From the sequence record NC_042013.1: 64,000 bases of DNA. One strand, given 5' to 3'. Shown in pieces: positions 2,502-58,787 of the stretch. Under the pieces are notes generated by a model. The model was not told where the DNA came from. It did no database searches and was given only the letters and a program-made list of their open reading frames with translations. Both the position numbers and the translations under genes were made by a program. The stretch's first letter is position 1. Each line of letters opens with the position of its first letter.

Positions 2502-2693
2502 ATGAAAATCACATCTAATTTTACAATCATTGTTATTTGTTCAATTTTTGCAGGTATGTTTCTCGCTACCATTCTCGGTATGCATTACACCAAAAAAGTG
2601 CCTGAAAAAGTAGTAATCATCCCAACTCATTTGATCGAAAAGTCATTTTCTCCAACCGAAACACAGCGTATCCTAACTCCAACGAAAGATTAA
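2502..2693 (+). CDS. small membrane protein
   Basis: GGAG RBS; hydrophobic N-terminal helix. Confidence 0.65.
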   Translation: MKITSNFTIIVICSIFAGMFLATILGMHYTKKVPEKVVIIPTHLIEKSFSPTETQRILTPTKD

Positions 2694-2697
2694 AAAA

Positions 2698-3054
2698 ATG
2701 GCAAATTTTTTCACATTCAAAGTAGATGTAGATGGTAATATTATTGAAGAAGTAAGTGCCGTTTATATCAATGGATATCAAGTTGATGAACGTATTCTTG
2801 AAGATGTTATGTTTCGTATCAAGCCAACCAGTGATCGTAAAGATATCATTGTTGAGGTGGTTGAAGATAGCGCAGAATATTTTAACAAATTGAACACAGC
2901 AAAGTGGCTCAAGGAAGTAAAGAATTGCGCAATCAATTACGACGTCTTTTCTCTATCTGAAGATGGTTCGGATGATGACGGCGTGTTGTATGACAAAGAC
3001 AAACCATATTCCGATCAAGGCGCATATTACGTTTCGGAACCCGTTTTTCCATGA
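2698..3054 (+). CDS. hypothetical protein
   Basis: Compact ORF in operon. Confidence 0.7.
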   Translation: MANFFTFKVDVDGNIIEEVSAVYINGYQVDERILEDVMFRIKPTSDRKDIIVEVVEDSAEYFNKLNTAKWLKEVKNCAINYDVFSLSEDGSDDDGVLYDKDKPYSDQGAYYVSEPVFP

Positions 3055-3383
3055 CCAATTTTACGCCTAATCTTAACATATTATTTGATAAGATGGTTGA
3101 ATGGGATATATTTTGTTTATCATATACTCCAGACGAGGAAGATTGCATTCGTGTTACTCGGTTGTCCTCGTTTGGTAGTTATTCTGCTCAAAATATAGAT
3201 GAAATATTACCGTTCAAGATTTTTGATTCTATTTCCGATGTCAGACCGTGTTTAACATTTGATTTGTTTTCAAGATCGTCTTTTAGTGAATTTCTGTTTA
3301 GATCAGATGGAAATTTTGTAGACCTAACAACAGAACAAGCATCATCAATTCTTAAAAAACATACAACTCTTTTAGACTGTTAA
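3051..3383 (+). CDS. ISDIIP-motif family A protein
   Basis: IDEILPF. Confidence 0.7.
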   Translation: MTNFTPNLNILFDKMVEWDIFCLSYTPDEEDCIRVTRLSSFGSYSAQNIDEILPFKIFDSISDVRPCLTFDLFSRSSFSEFLFRSDGNFVDLTTEQASSILKKHTTLLDC

Positions 3384-3407
3384 TTTAACGTAAAAGGAAA
3401 GTTTATT

Positions 3408-3794
3408 ATGAAAAAATATGTAAGTTTTGACTTTCATACCAATTACTTCAGTGACGACGACCCTGTTTTTCATGTCTTTGGCTTCACTGTTGATGATCCA
3501 ACCGGAAAGATTCAAGAGTTGGTCAACGGTGATGATTGGGTAACAGAACTCGCGGAGGAATTAGAAGGGATGCTAGAAACTTCCCTTACAGCGGTTTTTT
3601 ATCCAGAGGAACAATTCTTCGGTTCTACCAGCTATGAAATCGATGATAGCCATTTGGATAACATTATTTCAGGAATGGAATATGCTCGCAAATGGTTTGA
3701 AGAAGCGGGTGGTATTGTTGGGGAACTTGTCACAGTAGTTGGTGGAGAACAGGATGATCTTGAGGGAAAACTCAAAGTCGAACTTGGAATGTAA
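3408..3794 (+). CDS. acidic hypothetical protein
   Basis: AAGGA RBS, 128 aa. Confidence 0.7.
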   Translation: MKKYVSFDFHTNYFSDDDPVFHVFGFTVDDPTGKIQELVNGDDWVTELAEELEGMLETSLTAVFYPEEQFFGSTSYEIDDSHLDNIISGMEYARKWFEEAGGIVGELVTVVGGEQDDLEGKLKVELGM

Positions 3795-3803
3795 TATTTT
3801 CGA

Positions 3804-3831
3804 TTGACATTTATAGTTCTTCCGTTATTAT
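3804..3831 (+). promoter_or_regulatory. sigma70-type early promoter
   Basis: TTGACA-N16-TATTAT. Confidence 0.65.
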
Positions 3832-3861
3832 GAATCTAATTTGTTCAATAAGGAGATTCAT

Positions 3862-4158
3862 ATGCCGTATTTTCGTGAGCTACAAGATGGTAATGGTGTT
3901 TTGGTATCTTCTATGAAGATGCTAACCAAAGCAGATGTCGAGTATGTTGCCGAGGTTTTTAACCTCCTTGATCCAAGCCATCTCTATGAGGCGTCACGCA
4001 ATTTTATGGGATATGAGGGTTTTGACGGCACCGTATCCCGTTACGAAAAATCAGTGTTTGGTCATAAGGGGAAATACATCGAAACTATTTCCCGCCAAGA
4101 ACTTCTCGAAATTTGTGATGACAGACCTATGGTTCACCAATCGGTTTCACATGTCTGA
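3862..4158 (+). CDS. hypothetical protein
   Basis: AAGGAG RBS before ATG 3862. Confidence 0.7.
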   Translation: MPYFRELQDGNGVLVSSMKMLTKADVEYVAEVFNLLDPSHLYEASRNFMGYEGFDGTVSRYEKSVFGHKGKYIETISRQELLEICDDRPMVHQSVSHV

Positions 4159-4468
4159 GACAATTTTAAAAAATAATATATTGAAATGTGATTTTTCCAT
4201 AATCACATTTTCTGGAACCGAGTTTAGTGTGTATTTTTATAGACTCGGGAAATACGAATGCACAATGGTTAACTGCATATCTGAAATATTTCCATTCGTA
4301 ATAGACGTAGATAATATAAGTTCTATGACTATCAATGTTTGGGATAACAACGAAACTGTACAAGTTGATATTCATCCAAAGGGTGAATATGAAAGACTTG
4401 ACCACGAAGATTCTATTAAATTTCTTATTGAAAATTCAACATTCGGTGAGATGCGTTATGTCTCCTGA
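4151..4468 (+). CDS. family A protein
   Basis: ISEIFPF; start re-assigned to ATG 4151. Confidence 0.7.
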   Translation: MSETILKNNILKCDFSIITFSGTEFSVYFYRLGKYECTMVNCISEIFPFVIDVDNISSMTINVWDNNETVQVDIHPKGEYERLDHEDSIKFLIENSTFGEMRYVS

Positions 4469-4757
4469 ACAAAAACGTTTGATCCATATCTTCACAAAAT
4501 TTAACGTCGATGAAATCGAATATTACAACGGCGAGTATATGTTGGATGTCAATGGTACTTACGTCTATACCTACGATATTAAAGACTACTTACCCGTTGT
4601 GATTAAAGCAGGTGATATATTCGAATTCAGTATAAAAAATGTTCACGGGACTATCGTTCTTCATATACCAACCTTTCAACACAAACCTCTTTATTCCGAA
4701 AAAGTTTATGATTGGTTTAAAGCCAACACTACGTTTTATGATTTTTCACCGGATTGA
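4458..4757 (+). CDS. family A protein
   Basis: IKDYLPV; start re-assigned to ATG 4458. Confidence 0.7.
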   Translation: MSPEQKRLIHIFTKFNVDEIEYYNGEYMLDVNGTYVYTYDIKDYLPVVIKAGDIFEFSIKNVHGTIVLHIPTFQHKPLYSEKVYDWFKANTTFYDFSPD

Positions 4758-9694: not shown

Positions 9695-10155
9695 ACTATA
9701 AGGTTGCGGCTAAAATTTTTGGATATTTCTACGTAAAATATCTGTGGGTACATTCAATTGTAGGTCCGTTTTTTCTTAGCATCGGTTTGCTAATATTCCT
9801 AAACCCGTTGTTCTCTTGGGATATGTGGTCTACAATTTTTGGCATCATATCACTTGTCATTGCATTGGTAGTAGGTATTAAAATGGTCAATGATATTTCA
9901 AATGGTGTATCAGTTGGATATACTAATCAAGTCATTAACCAAGTCCCGTTTAGATATAAACTCACCTTTCAGCATTATCTGTCAGTTCTTCTGTACGTGT
10001 TTATCATTTCATACGGCATCTATGCAGGAATTAGCGGTGACGAAATTCTATCAAACGAAATTCGAAACCTCATAATTAAAGTCGGCATCCTTGGTACGGT
10101 TTCTTATATCGGTATCCGTAGTCGTATTAATAAGATGGAAATGAATAAGAGTTGA
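9691..10155 (+). CDS. integral membrane protein (about 4 TM)
   Basis: Four hydrophobic segments. Confidence 0.72.
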   Translation: MNYKVAAKIFGYFYVKYLWVHSIVGPFFLSIGLLIFLNPLFSWDMWSTIFGIISLVIALVVGIKMVNDISNGVSVGYTNQVINQVPFRYKLTFQHYLSVLLYVFIISYGIYAGISGDEILSNEIRNLIIKVGILGTVSYIGIRSRINKMEMNKS

Positions 10156-10193
10156 CATCTTTTAGAAATCTTGTATGATATCCTCATCGAAAA
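10152..10193 (+). promoter_or_regulatory. early promoter with ATCGAAA leader
   Basis: TTGACA-N16-TATGAT, ATCGAAAA at 10186. Confidence 0.65.
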
Positions 10194-10211
10194 ATATGGT
10201 TGAGGTAAAAA

Positions 10212-10514
10212 ATGTCAAGTGGTCTGGTATATACTTATTGGTATGACAAAAAAGGTGACATGTATAAGTATATCTTCGATTTGGATAACAATGAGAAATG
10301 GAAAGTTGATCTTGTAAGTTACGAGTGGATTAATTGCACATATAAAGGTTCAGCAGACCCACTTATGGTTTTGTTTTTTCCATATGGAATCATTGCGTAC
10401 CTGTTTTTTGGCGGCGCACCAGCTTGGATGTGGGGTGTAAAAGAAGTAGAACGTAAAAATAGCAAACATTATAGGAGGTTAATGTGTTCTGGAATAAAAA
10501 ACCAAAATCGTTAG
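10212..10514 (+). CDS. hypothetical membrane-associated protein
   Basis: GAGG RBS; hydrophobic segment. Confidence 0.65.
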   Translation: MSSGLVYTYWYDKKGDMYKYIFDLDNNEKWKVDLVSYEWINCTYKGSADPLMVLFFPYGIIAYLFFGGAPAWMWGVKEVERKNSKHYRRLMCSGIKNQNR

Positions 10515-10804
10515 GTTATTTCAAAGACAACTATATCCACGCCTATGAAGAAACGTACGGTGACACCAAAGGGTATAGCTACTTCTATTGTATGGTATTT
10601 CTCAAAGCCGCGTATAAGATCGACGTCGGTGGCGAGAATAGCGAATTTTCGGACATTCGATCTTTCGTTAAGGAAGCTGTTCGAAGGGAAAGCAGAGCTA
10701 TCCTAAACAAATTGAAACAGTCAAATAAAGACAGATTTCATTTGACGTGGAAGCTGATTGCTCTTAGACGTGTTCGAAGAGAACTTAGGAATCTAGGGGA
10801 GTAA
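10484..10804 (+). CDS. hypothetical protein, MFxxKK-LGY group
   Basis: AGGAGG RBS; resembles 31144-31497. Confidence 0.7.
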   Translation: MFWNKKPKSLGYFKDNYIHAYEETYGDTKGYSYFYCMVFLKAAYKIDVGGENSEFSDIRSFVKEAVRRESRAILNKLKQSNKDRFHLTWKLIALRRVRRELRNLGE

Positions 10805-10811
10805 TATTCCC

Positions 10812-11096
10812 CTAGATATTTTTAAATTCCACGTGATCAATAACACATTTGTATAAATCGGTATCTATTTCCTCAATAGGTATGATTCCAAATATTTTAG
10901 CCTCTCCTCCTTCATATGGAAAAGATAGCTCTGGAATTTTAATTCCTAGATAATTGACTTCTGAATGAATTAGTATAGGATTCCATTGAAACCTAGTAAA
11001 TTCAAAATAACCAGTAATGTCACTTTTTAGAGTTATATTCATAATCATTCCCTTCGTTTTAACGATCAGATGGGAAAACGCTAAAGCATTTCCCAT
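10812..11096 (-). CDS. orphan hypothetical protein (start uncertain)
   Basis: Counter-oriented ORF of up to 94 aa, very AT-rich. Confidence 0.55.
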   Translation of the reverse strand: MGNALAFSHLIVKTKGMIMNITLKSDITGYFEFTRFQWNPILIHSEVNYLGIKIPELSFPYEGGEAKIFGIIPIEEIDTDLYKCVIDHVEFKNI

Positions 11097-11275
11097 CTAA
11101 GTCGATCTTTTTTGGTATATTTCATTCATTTCATTCATTCAAAATACCAAAACGATAAAGTTTTTAAAATATAATAATTCAAAATATTATTATTAATATG
11201 CGGTATGATAGAAGGTTTTATTCCCCCGCTGGTTTGATACCAAAAAAATATTAAGGCAAATCAAACCAGCGGGGA
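11068..11275. repeat. cluster of inverted and short direct repeats, AT-rich
   Basis: AGATGGGAAA/TTTCCCATCT (11068-11098); TTTTGGTAT/ATACCAAAA (11110-11152) around TTCA repeats; perfect 15-bp IR CCCCGCTGGTTTGAT/ATCAAACCAGCGGGG (11224-11274). Confidence 0.85.
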
Positions 11276-11279
11276 TTTT

Positions 11280-11640
11280 AACATGCGTTCAAGCATATCG
11301 GGCGCATACGACATAATCTTGGCGGTTATCCTGTACCAGATGTAATGTGTCGGAAAATCTGCATTTCTGCAACAACGGTTGTGGGGCAATTTGTTTCCAC
11401 GTAATAGCTAAAAACTATGCACTCGATCTTTAGCTATCAGAAGTTCTTCAATACTAGAAGTTTACTTCTTCATTTCGCTTGCCATCAGCAAGGTGACTCT
11501 TTCGTTATCTTACTAGGAGATAACACGGCGATCCATTAACTTAAGAAATCCGGCCAAGGGCTTAAGCTAAACTACATTCCGGTCGGCTTGGAAATATAAG
11601 CCTCATCGATCAACTCACGGTATAACCTGATCTGTTTTTT
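11280..11640. ncRNA. candidate structured non-coding RNA (unclassified)
   Basis: ORF-free, GC-richer than flanks, at least 8 consecutive hairpins, U-tract at 11635-11640. Confidence 0.4.
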
Positions 11641-11751
11641 ATAAACATTCCATTGACTTAATTTATATCAAATTGTAACAATACCTAGCAATAAAAAATG
11701 GTTGACTATAGCTAAATTAATGATATTATTGATAGATTATAGGAGACGTGT

Positions 11752-12111
11752 ATGCGCCAATCAATTACATATAAAAGCTTTGCCGGATGGGATGATAAAG
11801 AGAGAAGAGACTATCTATATAGCCGAACGAATATTAAATTTGAAAACTTTCCCAATTTTGAATCTGGTATTTGTCAAGCAGTGAAAATAGATAATGGAAT
11901 TTATTGGGCGCATTATTCAAATTCATTGGAAAGCTTTTTGCCAATGAAACACGATATGAAAAATATAACTACGCTGGATTATGGATCAGTAACTGATTAT
12001 TTTCCGCAAGATTTAATACGATTAACCGTTGGAGATTGTAATAGCCCTATCATGGATAACGTTTCATTTTTTGAAATAGAAGATTTTTTGATTAAGCATT
12101 GCACAATATGA
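11752..12111 (+). CDS. family A protein (two motif copies)
   Basis: ITYKS; GIYW; LESFLPM and VTDYFPQ; AGGAG RBS. Confidence 0.72.
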   Translation: MRQSITYKSFAGWDDKERRDYLYSRTNIKFENFPNFESGICQAVKIDNGIYWAHYSNSLESFLPMKHDMKNITTLDYGSVTDYFPQDLIRLTVGDCNSPIMDNVSFFEIEDFLIKHCTI

Positions 12112-12121
12112 AAGACCAGTA

Positions 12122-12448
12122 ATGATGTATATCGTGTATAGAAGCTACGACAATTTAGATAACCTTCGTCACTCGACTATTGTTGAAAATCATTTCATAC
12201 CAGAAAGTTATCCTACTGGCGCTTGGTTCTCTGGTAATGATGAAACTGAACACGTAGAAGATTACCTTCCAATAAAATGTGTCCCATCAGAAAATGTTGA
12301 GTGCGCATTTCTATCTAATCAAAATCTAACCATCTATTCAAAGAACCAAAATCTACGCCGTCATAATCTTGAAAGACATGATGGTTGGAATATGATACAA
12401 TGGATCATACGGGTGGAAATAGAACTTTCTGATTTTGAGGCTTATTAA
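12122..12448 (+). CDS. family A protein
   Basis: IVYRS; GAW; VEDYLPI. Confidence 0.72.
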   Translation: MMYIVYRSYDNLDNLRHSTIVENHFIPESYPTGAWFSGNDETEHVEDYLPIKCVPSENVECAFLSNQNLTIYSKNQNLRRHNLERHDGWNMIQWIIRVEIELSDFEAY

Positions 12449-17633: not shown

Positions 17634-17675
17634 TTGACAAAATTTCCAAATCATATATACATACACTATCGAAAC
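17634..17675 (+). promoter_or_regulatory. early promoter with ATCGAAAC leader
   Basis: TTGACA-N16-TATACA, ATCGAAAC 17668-17675. Confidence 0.7.
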
Positions 17676-23533: not shown

Positions 23534-23897
23534 GGTAGACCGCGTTAAGCGGTTTCCTCTTCTCATTCGTGGCATGGAAAATCCATCTGAAGAAGTTCAG
23601 ATGGCTGCGATTGATCATTCGTTATATCTTATTAGAGATATAGAAAATCCGACTATTAATGTGATGTTGTATGTGGTTAATCAAGACGGATATATGCTTG
23701 AATACTTGTATGAACCACCGCAAGAAGTCCAAGTTGCCGCAATTAGAAACAATCCTTATGCGATTCGTTTTGTTAAAAATAAAACACCGGAAATGCAACT
23801 TCTAGCCATTATGAATAATCCCGATGTTATTCATCACATTATCAATCTTCACGATGATGCGATTGAATATCTGAAATCCGCTGGAATATACAAATAA
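23514..23897 (+). CDS. DUF4116-like helical repeat protein
   Basis: About 24-aa repeats I..I.NP..EVQ.AAI. Confidence 0.7.
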   Translation: MTKNINEVDRVKRFPLLIRGMENPSEEVQMAAIDHSLYLIRDIENPTINVMLYVVNQDGYMLEYLYEPPQEVQVAAIRNNPYAIRFVKNKTPEMQLLAIMNNPDVIHHIINLHDDAIEYLKSAGIYK

Positions 23898-23901
23898 TGA
23901 T

Positions 23902-23943
23902 TTGACATTATTTTTTAATAGCGTATAACTGAACCATCGAAAC
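23902..23943 (+). promoter_or_regulatory. early promoter with ATCGAAAC leader
   Basis: TTGACA-N16-TATAAC, ATCGAAAC 23936-23943. Confidence 0.75.
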
Positions 23944-23961
23944 ATTGAAGGAGATTTGTAG

Positions 23962-47466: not shown

Positions 47467-47926
47467 ATCATATGATTATTATGTTATGGCGGTTCACAAG
47501 AATGATCCCTACGATAGTCTACCCCTATGCGAATTGACGTGTCGTTTGGAAAAGGAACCGGATATCATTACCGACAATATCCACGATATTTTGAAAAGCA
47601 CCGGTCATTCATTGAGCGGTTATCATCTTGTCATAATCAACAAGCTTACCGGTATCGGGGTATATGATAGTGGTTATATTGAGCATTATAACGTTGACGA
47701 CATTTATGCGGTCTTTCAATATAACAAACCACCTGAAGGTTTTTACGAATACGTCATAGATTCTATACCCCCAAAAAATAATTCTCCAAAAATTCTATAT
47801 GAAATTGACGGGGTATCGGTGACAGAAGATGAATATAATCAACGTGTTAGAATTACTCACGTAAAAGAAATGACACTTGAGGAAATAGAAAAAGAACTCG
47901 GATACAAAATTATTTTAAAAAAGTAG
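47459..47926 (+). CDS. hypothetical protein
   Basis: C-terminal KEMTLEEIEKELGYKI motif. Confidence 0.7.
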   Translation: MDKSYDYYVMAVHKNDPYDSLPLCELTCRLEKEPDIITDNIHDILKSTGHSLSGYHLVIINKLTGIGVYDSGYIEHYNVDDIYAVFQYNKPPEGFYEYVIDSIPPKNNSPKILYEIDGVSVTEDEYNQRVRITHVKEMTLEEIEKELGYKIILKK

Positions 47927-47968
47927 TTGACTTTATTTTTGGATAGGGTATAACAACATCATCGAAAC
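47927..47968 (+). promoter_or_regulatory. early promoter with ATCGAAAC leader
   Basis: TTGACT-N16-TATAAC, ATCGAAAC 47961-47968. Confidence 0.75.
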
Positions 47969-47987
47969 AAACAAAGGAGACGACATT

Positions 47988-52780: not shown

Positions 52781-53440
52781 ATGAGTGACCTCCGTAAATT
52801 TATCAATATCTTAAACGAATCTTATACTGCTCCAGCATCAAGAGCTATTAATGAAGGCGTTGAAGGCGAGACTCTTGGAGTTATCGCTAAGAAGCACCTT
52901 AAAATTAATTCTCTTCTTGCAAAAGGTGACGTAAATCATGACGTTACTATTTCTTCTCTAAAGAAGGCAATGGAAGAAGCTTATGATGCTGGTTATGGTG
53001 CGGGCCTTAATAAGAAAGAGCGCGAAAACAAGAAAAAGAATGAGTCTATTTCCGAGGCTGTTGAAGGCGAAACTATTTCGGTAATCGCTAAGAAGCATCT
53101 TGGCGTAAAATCACTACAGGCTAAGGGTATGGTTCCAGAAGAGCGTGCGATTTCTGATTACCGCAAGGCACTTCAGATGGCATATGATGCTGGTTACGGT
53201 GCAGGAACCAATAAGAAAGAAAAAGAAGATAAGACTCTTTCTGAAGGTGTTGAGGGTGAAACTCTTACATCTATCGCTAAGAAGCACCTTAAGATTCCAA
53301 CCCTAGAGTTACGTAATAGTGATAGCAAAGATTTTCATGACCTTGGAGTAGTACAGATCAAAGCAGCACTTGAGGCGGCTTATGATGCAGGCTATGGTGC
53401 AGGCATCAACAAGAAAGAAAAAGAAGATAAGAAGAAGTAA
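52781..53440 (+). CDS. triple DUF6900-like repeat protein, putative internal head polyprotein
   Basis: Three ~65-aa repeats IAKKHL...AYDAGYGAG; third has TLELRNSDSKDFHD; AATAAATA at 52744. Confidence 0.72.
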   Translation: MSDLRKFINILNESYTAPASRAINEGVEGETLGVIAKKHLKINSLLAKGDVNHDVTISSLKKAMEEAYDAGYGAGLNKKERENKKKNESISEAVEGETISVIAKKHLGVKSLQAKGMVPEERAISDYRKALQMAYDAGYGAGTNKKEKEDKTLSEGVEGETLTSIAKKHLKIPTLELRNSDSKDFHDLGVVQIKAALEAAYDAGYGAGINKKEKEDKKK

Positions 53441-58712: not shown

Positions 58713-58787
58713 GGGAGTGTGGCTGACTGGTAAAGCAGATGCCTTCAAAACATTGAGATGCGGGTTCGATTCCTGTCACTCCCACCA
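58713..58787 (+). tRNA. tRNA with anticodon TCA (opal/UGA suppressor type)
   Basis: 75-nt cloverleaf GGGAGTG/CACTCCC, loop CT-TCA-AA, 5-nt variable loop, TTCGATT T-loop, A73 and encoded CCA; C31-A39 mismatch. Confidence 0.85.

Follow-up and report, generated by a model that had tools for sequence, protein, structure and literature searches.

We propose that window positions 11205–11652, read on the minus strand, are probably one of a pair of paralogous genes encoding a structured RNA (approximately 450 nt), which belongs to a family from T4-like phages and would be a stand-alone, trans-acting molecule. The window is the whole analyzed stretch of 64,000 nucleotides. It comes from Agrobacterium phage Atu_ph07, a T4-related jumbo phage (490,380 bp, MF403008.1), and window position x corresponds to genome position 372000 + x. 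The original prediction placed here, at 11280–11640, a possibly new large phage noncoding RNA of no recognizable class. The large, conserved and structured phage RNA is borne out, but not its lack of relatives: the Atu_ph07 element is a divergent member of an RNA family widespread in T4-like phages. The interval was also too narrow, as the element takes in a large hairpin at 11224–11274 as well.

The GenBank record has no annotation between window positions 10155 and 12353. The locus does contain the longest ORF-free stretch of the whole window, as had been claimed: with stop-to-stop ORFs of at least 60 aa considered in all frames, this stretch spans 11097–11656 (560 nt). It is also richer in GC than its flanks (0.42–0.43 at 11200–11500 vs 0.25–0.33 on either side). 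A hidden coding gene was ruled out by stops that crowd all six frames; moreover, the substitutions between the two copies of the element are compensatory within stems and not codon-like. Unannotated ORFs of 94–119 aa are found at 10212–10514 (+), 10484–10804 (+), 10812–11096 (−), 11752–12111 (+) and 12122–12448 (+), and those of the unannotated ORFs of 10155–12353 that were tested have no Pfam matches. Boxes TTGACATTATTT...GTATAAC followed by CATCGAAAC...GGAGA, which resemble a phage promoter with a leader signal as used before several genes, recur in the window at 17643, 18165, 20526, 21808, 23890–23956 and 47915–47981. Three tandem units of approximately 200 nt with 64–85% identity, located at 52832–53432, are probably a repeated protein domain.

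Known RNA classes were searched for with Rfam and ARAGORN. No credible Rfam model was found at E 10 in the region 11000–11800 on both strands, and the output at E ≤ 10 consists of chance microRNA- and snoRNA-like matches on the large hairpin only. In particular, no match to tRNA, tmRNA, RNase P or SRP RNA was obtained in the region at this cutoff, in agreement with the earlier statement that their hallmarks are absent; the same holds for 6S RNA. In the whole window ARAGORN and Rfam (at gathering thresholds) yield two tRNAs only, both located elsewhere. The sequence at 58713–58787 is reported by ARAGORN as 'tRNA-SeC' with anticodon UCA, scores 60 bits as a tRNA in Rfam, and is opal-suppressor-like.

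A search of the whole assembled genome (public record) with the region revealed a second copy. The two copies, further referred to as A and B, share 73% identity over 541 nt (blastn), the large upstream hairpin included, and have diverged by about 25%. With model R3, described below, a third copy was not detected in the 490-kb genome. The parts of the element are given below in window coordinates, beginning with the two copies and then, for copy A, in the minus sense from 5′ to 3′.

11205–11652, minus strand: copy A, whole element, the block similar to copy B; proposed 5′ end at about 11652 and 3′ end at about 11205.
Genome positions ~490005–490380 plus 1–72, across the start of the record: copy B, flanked by the IF3 gene (minus strand) and a small gene on the plus strand.
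11660–11667, minus strand: conjectural candidate for a late promoter, TATAAATT, T4-type-like, just upstream of the 5′ boundary.
11570–11652, minus strand: 5′ block of 83 nt, 100% identical in A and B, containing E1, Pa and the start of Pb.
11608–11632, minus strand: hairpin E1 (GAUCA...UGAUC), preceded by A6 and identical in A and B; this is the previously listed GATCA/TGATC before T6.
11585–11602, minus strand: hairpin Pa (GGCUU...AAGCC), identical in A and B.
11536–11570, minus strand: hairpin Pb with arms 11570–11561 and 11545–11536; in five of nine pairs both bases differ between A and B.
11504–11524, minus strand: hairpin Pc (GUUAUCU/AGAUAAC, loop CUAGUA), one compensated pair between A and B.
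11478–11492, minus strand: hairpin Pe (CUUGC UGAUG GCAAG), invariant in A and B.
11439–11469, minus strand: P3 (AGAAG...CUUCU plus an inner hairpin), preceded by AAAUGA and aligned by R3 to family P3.
11404–11437, minus strand: P2 (AUAGCUAAAG/UUUAGCUAU), aligned by R3 to family P2; two compensated pairs between A and B.
11416–11422, minus strand: 5′ strand of the predicted pseudoknot Px (GUGCAUA) in the P2 loop, partner 11308–11302.
11381–11400, minus strand: hairpin P2a (GUGG...CCAC), specific for the Atu type; GUAC/GUAC in B, i.e. two compensated pairs.
11372–11378, minus strand: invariant single strand CCGUUGU, present in both Atu copies and invariant or nearly so in the 38 and 52 family sequences.
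11360–11371, minus strand: small hairpin P2b (UGCA GAAA UGCA), identical in A and B.
11309–11352, minus strand: P1 stem with the invariant 17-mer as its cap; two compensated pairs in the outer stem between A and B.
11322–11338, minus strand: invariant hairpin GGUACAGGAUAACCGCC (GGCGGTTATCCTGTACC on the plus strand), an exact 17-mer in copies A and B.
11302–11308, minus strand: 3′ strand of Px (UAUGCGC), starting at the first base after P1.
11224–11274, minus strand: H0, a GC-rich hairpin of 15 bp at the 3′ end.

Five of these hairpins (E1, Pa, Pb, Pc and Pe) form the 5′ domain of the Atu copies, and the two small hairpins between P2 and P1 are an addition of the Atu type. Upstream of the element, a σ70-like site is found on the minus strand at 11764–11736. 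Words similar to ATAAATACT precede structural genes of Atu_ph07.

Comparison of the copies provides strong evidence for a conserved fold: within the helices, both bases have been exchanged with pairing retained in 21 pairs, a single partner has changed in one more, and another is disrupted, this in copy A alone. The outer stem of P1 contains one C·A, which is repaired in copy B, and in P3 an inner C-G pair of copy A is replaced by U-A in copy B. In copy A, Pb has one G·U in the minus sense. Further support comes from an Atu-like element, L170, located on a 210–214-kb contig (L170/L272) that is binned as Magnetospirillum sp. 64-120 and is probably a large phage genome. There Pc, P2 and H0 recur with different letters (GCUGAUG/CAUCAGC at the place of Pc), and CCAC UGCUG GUGG is observed at the place of Pe. 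At the place of H0, copy B, L170 and a third Atu-like element, L217, all have a perfect hairpin of different letters in a CCCCC/GGGGG frame, and other types of the family have a hairpin there too.

The helices listed in the original prediction are all present in the sequence. Copy B or the family supports four of them: CGACATA/TGTGTCG and the stem inside it (P1), TAGCTAAA/TTTAGCTA (P2), AGAAGT/ACTTCT (P3) and GTTATCT/AGATAAC (Pc). CTTGC/GCAAG, GGCTT/AAGCC and GATCA/TGATC consist of the same letters in both copies and therefore carry no covariation test. Two pairings were not upheld. The helix ATGCGTTC/GGGCGCAT is lost in copy B and overlaps a pseudoknot strand; the long-range pairing CTTGGC/GCCAAG, from which a pseudoknot had been suspected, is a competitor of the P1 stem, and copy B keeps it only with a bulge.

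A different pseudoknot, Px, is formed by a strand in the P2 loop (11427–11413) and the segment directly following P1. In copy B the strands at the homologous places are GUAGUAAA/UUUACUAC, the second again starting at the first base after P1. Taken separately, each Atu copy gives p ~0.05 for Px in position-constrained shuffles, and an unconstrained search is not significant. In the family, all five Px pairs covary (38 sequences).

The loop shared by copies A and B (GGCGGTTRTCCTGTACC on the plus strand) served as the seed for the search of family members in IMG/VR. The 17-mer GGUACAGGAYAACCGCC has 115 exact matches in this database. We examined 113 of them and found family flanks in about 98, of which 50 are distinct. 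Markers on the contigs are T4-like: gp46-like SMC/AAA_23, a T4 baseplate protein and DNA ligase. Two contigs, L045 and L106, look cyanophage-like, and the latter encodes a bilin reductase. The common core contains, from 5′ to 3′, AAAGAC, P3, ACG, P2 with one Px strand in its loop, CCGUUGU, AAAGAC, P1 capped by the 17-mer, the other Px strand, and the GC-rich hairpin H0. It is preceded by a lineage-specific 5′ domain, which in freshwater phages is the Polynucleobacter-1 motif.

Collection of homologues and a test for covariation had been suggested as a check, and two alignments paired well above shuffled controls. The first one comprises 38 members of the dominant type and the helices P3, P2, P1 and Px. 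In it 95.1% of the cells pair, compared to 74.1% in shuffled alignments, and 29 of 37 pairs change on both sides. When the 3′ partners are slid by 1–3 columns, pairing falls to 28–49%. The second alignment, of 52 cross-type sequences, was made with model R1 of the dominant type; here 95.7% of the cells pair (66.8% in shuffled alignments), and 27 of 32 pairs change on both sides, including all 14 pairs of P2. The columns of the invariant 17-mer hairpin are unchanged in both alignments.

Model R1 matches Atu_ph07 in the loop only. The cross-type model R3, built from the 52 sequences, finds copy A at 11291–11486 (minus strand) with 25.3 bits and E 1.1e-3, and copy B with 30.3 bits and E 4.6e-5, these E-values being rough because of short calibration. 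Both matches are on the minus strand and extend over the full model (positions 1–149), the alignment of Atu P3 and P2 being fitted to the model. In a smaller search the E-values for the Atu copies were 2e-6 and 4.9e-5. Both copies thus have the 17-mer in P1, a full-length R3 match, Px and CCGUUGU. We show by these sequence comparisons that the Atu_ph07 element belongs to the P3-P2-CCGUUGU-P1-Px family, whose predicted fold is conserved and pseudoknotted.

Among approximately 50,700 deposited phage genomes, the invariant loop occurs in one isolate only, Atu_ph07, and blastn of family members against deposited phages gave no match. A near-match in Synechococcus phage ACG-2014d was rejected, as it lies inside a CDS and has no R3 match. 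Matches of the 17-mer in bacterial genomes are mostly due to chance; four of those checked have family-like flanks. Of these four, L170 and L217 are Atu-like, and L238 is a full-length family member. L217 (positions 2527–4624; Paramagnetospirillum caucaseum SO-1) is a copy in a 2.1-kb ORF-free gap of a bacterial chromosome contig, where it has a serine resolvase on one side and an SNF2/DEAD helicase of 1068 aa on the other. Searches with a 27-mer and with the word TGCCATCAGCAAGGTGA returned only Atu_ph07 itself or chance word matches. The sequencing runs containing the sequence are represented by metagenome contigs that are unstranded and probably derived from DNA; they are fragments of related strains, not transcripts. 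One contig of 603 nt (run X11) consists of copy A-like sequence with two mismatches (window 11355–11652) followed by the flank of copy B. This junction, together with the identity of the 83-nt block, suggests copy-to-copy conversion in a related strain.

In approximately 43 of the 50 loci the 5′ neighbor gene is co-directional with the RNA, and its stop codon often abuts the RNA. Most often this neighbor encodes a SegE-type GIY-YIG homing endonuclease (PF19835, E-values between 6e-33 and 9e-37); a PD-(D/E)XK nuclease takes its place in one locus, and elsewhere the genes are unrelated. The 3′ neighbor is variable and often convergent, hence the element is not an intron in a gene. In L015 and other nuclease-bearing loci, CCGUUGU is complementary to a conserved word in the GIY-YIG coding region about 330 nt from the loop, and alifold pairs the two. 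This modeled pairing could be due to chance or could link the RNA to nuclease expression. The neighborhoods of the Atu copies are different. Copy B is preceded by the IF3 gene, which has an intrinsic terminator of its own, and is followed by a convergent gene, while copy A has no minus-strand gene upstream. Consequently, neither a leader nor a 3′ UTR is a sufficient description of the RNA. The IF3 terminator is strong and bidirectional and is located at genome positions 215–234, directly after the phage gene and before copy B.

Folding energy and base-pair asymmetry bear on different questions. For the interval 11280–11640 the energy is only weakly better than that of shuffled sequences (z −1.7 on the plus strand and −2.2 on the minus strand), whereas with the boundaries 11205–11652 the z-scores are −4.56 for the minus strand and −4.64 for the plus strand. 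Since these values are equal, the energy demonstrates structure, not strand. A thermodynamic choice of the strand was therefore not used; besides, the differences in MFE between the strands are opposite in the two halves of the element. The strand follows from the excess of G·U over A·C in the family. In the minus sense, the helices of the 38 sequences contain 198 G·U and only 24 A·C cells, the numbers being swapped in the plus sense, and in P2 alone the ratio is 114 to 9. An earlier, cruder count gave 91 vs 30. The Atu copies by themselves have three G·U and one A·C, and their strand is assigned by homology: both Rfam motifs found in the family and all family models have the sense opposite to the plus strand of the window in every case. 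Thus the RNA of Atu_ph07, as far as sequence comparison can tell, is most likely read from the minus strand, from about 11652 to about 11205. The likely sense strand for the locus is thereby corrected, as the original prediction assumed the plus sense, with G-U pairs as support and the T6 tract as the 3′ end; in the minus sense T6 becomes A6 at the 5′ edge.

Several features nevertheless suggest a plus-strand RNA, with its start close to or beyond the large hairpin and its end at the weak hairpin with T6 (11630–11640), and the plus-sense features of Atu_ph07 look more conventional. The T6 tract follows GATCA...TGATC; in both copies H0 is followed on the plus strand by AUUUU, while in the minus sense no U-tract follows H0, which speaks against a discrete minus-sense RNA; promoter-like boxes of the next plus-strand genes start right after T6; the folding energy is as good as on the minus strand; and P1 of copy A has a U·G in the plus sense. 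Yet such an RNA would have to account for the rarity of plus-sense G·U in the family, for A·C mismatches in Pb and Px of copy A and in H0 of copy B, and for the relatives, where the plus-sense 3′ end lacks a T-tract and meets a convergent nuclease gene at its stop codon. We regard it as quite improbable. A cis-acting element has better prospects, although we still consider it unlikely: a 3′ UTR module could stabilize, process or terminate the upstream message, or control the adjacent endonuclease gene. In the majority of loci the element starts where the co-directional nuclease gene stops, and it closes the gene string, often with a convergent gene next; it has the strong terminal hairpin H0, and the predicted pairing of the invariant strand with the nuclease coding region would fit such control. 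However, the Atu copies have no nuclease gene, a good intrinsic terminator separates IF3 from copy B and no minus-strand gene lies upstream of copy A, the same core is found behind a nuclease, metallophosphatase, bilin reductase or DUF6267 gene, and a stabilizer would need far less than some 400 nt containing invariant loops and a pseudoknot.

The remaining two alternatives appear still less probable. The insertion of nuclease genes of two folds at one edge, the two copies with their identical 83-nt block and signs of conversion, and the use of transcripts by T4-type origins would be consistent with a DNA-level element, i.e. a replication origin, recombination hot spot or endonuclease target, with the helices being incidental or cruciforms. 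This is very hard to reconcile with the strand asymmetry of the G·U excess and with the 27–29 pairs having compensated changes, the loop-to-tail pseudoknot among them; also, no iterons or AT-rich unwinding repeats are observed inside the element. A group I-like intron devoid of an ORF, or some other self-processing ribozyme, traveling with the neighboring endonuclease (collaborative homing) is similarly hard to credit. It would explain why the element abuts GIY-YIG genes in T4-like phages and has a pseudoknot, invariant single strands and the size of a small intron. But neither Atu_ph07 nor L015 has an Intron_gpI or ribozyme match at E 10, the flanks are not halves of a gene, differ between loci and are often on the other strand, and the Atu copies are intergenic.

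The stand-alone RNA of the minus strand would be made as a discrete, stable molecule behind co-directional gene strings, either from its own promoter or by processing. It may act in trans, with the invariant hairpin and the invariant strand possibly offering a joint contact surface to a partner conserved in hosts of very different kinds; we can only conjecture both the action in trans and the conserved partner. Free-standing homing endonuclease genes would settle at the 5′ edge of the RNA gene because it is so conserved among co-infecting phages. Two unrelated nuclease folds ending at the same RNA edge mark the gene as a strongly conserved target.

A further possibility, which we consider doubtful, is that the family represents a new class of large functional phage RNA, namely a ribozyme or an RNA subunit or ligand of a conserved machine, with Atu_ph07 as its cultivable representative. 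Were this true, the invariant hairpin and strand would engage a target common to alpha- and beta-proteobacteria, cyanobacteria and rumen bacteria, and cow-rumen-2 and Polynucleobacter-1 would be fragments of a new RNA class. Irrespective of this, Atu_ph07, which infects A. tumefaciens C58, provides a tractable system for studies of the family.

Two modules of the family are already known as Rfam motifs of unknown function, cow-rumen-2 (RF02947), which corresponds to the P1 module, and Polynucleobacter-1 (RF01718), which is the 5′ domain of freshwater lineages, so the fold is not class-less. What is new is that both motifs lie contiguously and in the same sense within one conserved element of about 350–450 nt, presumably a single RNA, which links them into one larger pseudoknotted RNA of T4-like phages from very different environments. 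Within the literature searched, the covarying pseudoknot, the hot spot of endonuclease insertion and a cultivable jumbo phage with two divergent copies are new as well. The literature searched on the two motifs contained nothing beyond the listing of either one; for Polynucleobacter-1 the listing gives a possible role as cis-regulator (Genome Biol 2010, PMC2864571).

RF02947 has the invariant hairpin of the family (ACAGGAUNACC inside GG...CC) and, immediately 5′ of it, the corresponding strand (GCCGCYAU in RF02947 and CCGUUGU in the family), and its sense agrees with that of the family. In the rumen-type locus L032 it covers the 17-mer at 77 bits, R3 matching at the same place with E 8e-6, while on P1 of a freshwater member it scores weakly (20 bits). 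In contrast to the family RNA as a whole, RF02947 models only about 106 nt, and the Atu type adds the hairpins between P2 and P1, its own 5′ domain and H0. On Atu_ph07 (11000–11800, both strands) RF02947, with its gathering threshold of 66 bits, has no match at E ≤ 10.

In freshwater-type loci RF01718 scores 82–111 bits about 100 nt from the loop, being directly 5′ of the core, contiguous with it and in the same sense. The multi-hairpin domain of the Atu copies is found at this position too, and its elements follow a similar order, colinear by eye only. However, RF01718 (gathering threshold 37 bits) has no match in the Atu region at E ≤ 10, and R2, a model of the Polynucleobacter-1 domain, finds nothing in the window, L011, L012 and L002. 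The Atu copies and several other types of the family score with neither model, hence the 5′ domain is lineage-specific and Atu_ph07 is not an RF01718 member. We rejected homology of the two domains, suggestive as it is by eye, as unsupported by RF01718 and R2. Also rejected was the idea of a 23S rRNA mimic (GGUAC...GGAUAAC...ACCGCC): nhmmer yields nothing, and a gapped alignment is no better than with shuffled queries.

Among large RNAs, the closest parallels are GOLLD and ROOL, 'ornate' phage-associated RNAs studied by cryo-EM (bioRxiv 10.1101/2024.12.08.627333). Like them, the family RNA is phage-borne, long and rich in structure, its conservation is evident from covariation, and it has no known function. 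It differs in being smaller (about 350–450 nt) and in not residing beside tRNA genes. Association with tRNA clusters, considered by analogy with GOLLD and ROOL, was discarded, as 26 of 27 related loci have no adjacent tRNA and in L023 the tRNA is about 3 kb away. GOLLD and ROOL have no Rfam match in the window, in the region at E ≤ 10, or in the family loci.

Unlike group I introns, the family RNA is located outside any host gene and has no group I core. Free-standing endonuclease genes, such as the T4 seg genes, sit beside conserved phage genes. The Atu copies differ from GIY-YIG systems in having no endonuclease neighbor, while the family as a whole resembles GIY-YIG-associated RNAs and genes of T4-like phages in that at many loci SegE-type genes end exactly at the 5′ edge of the RNA.
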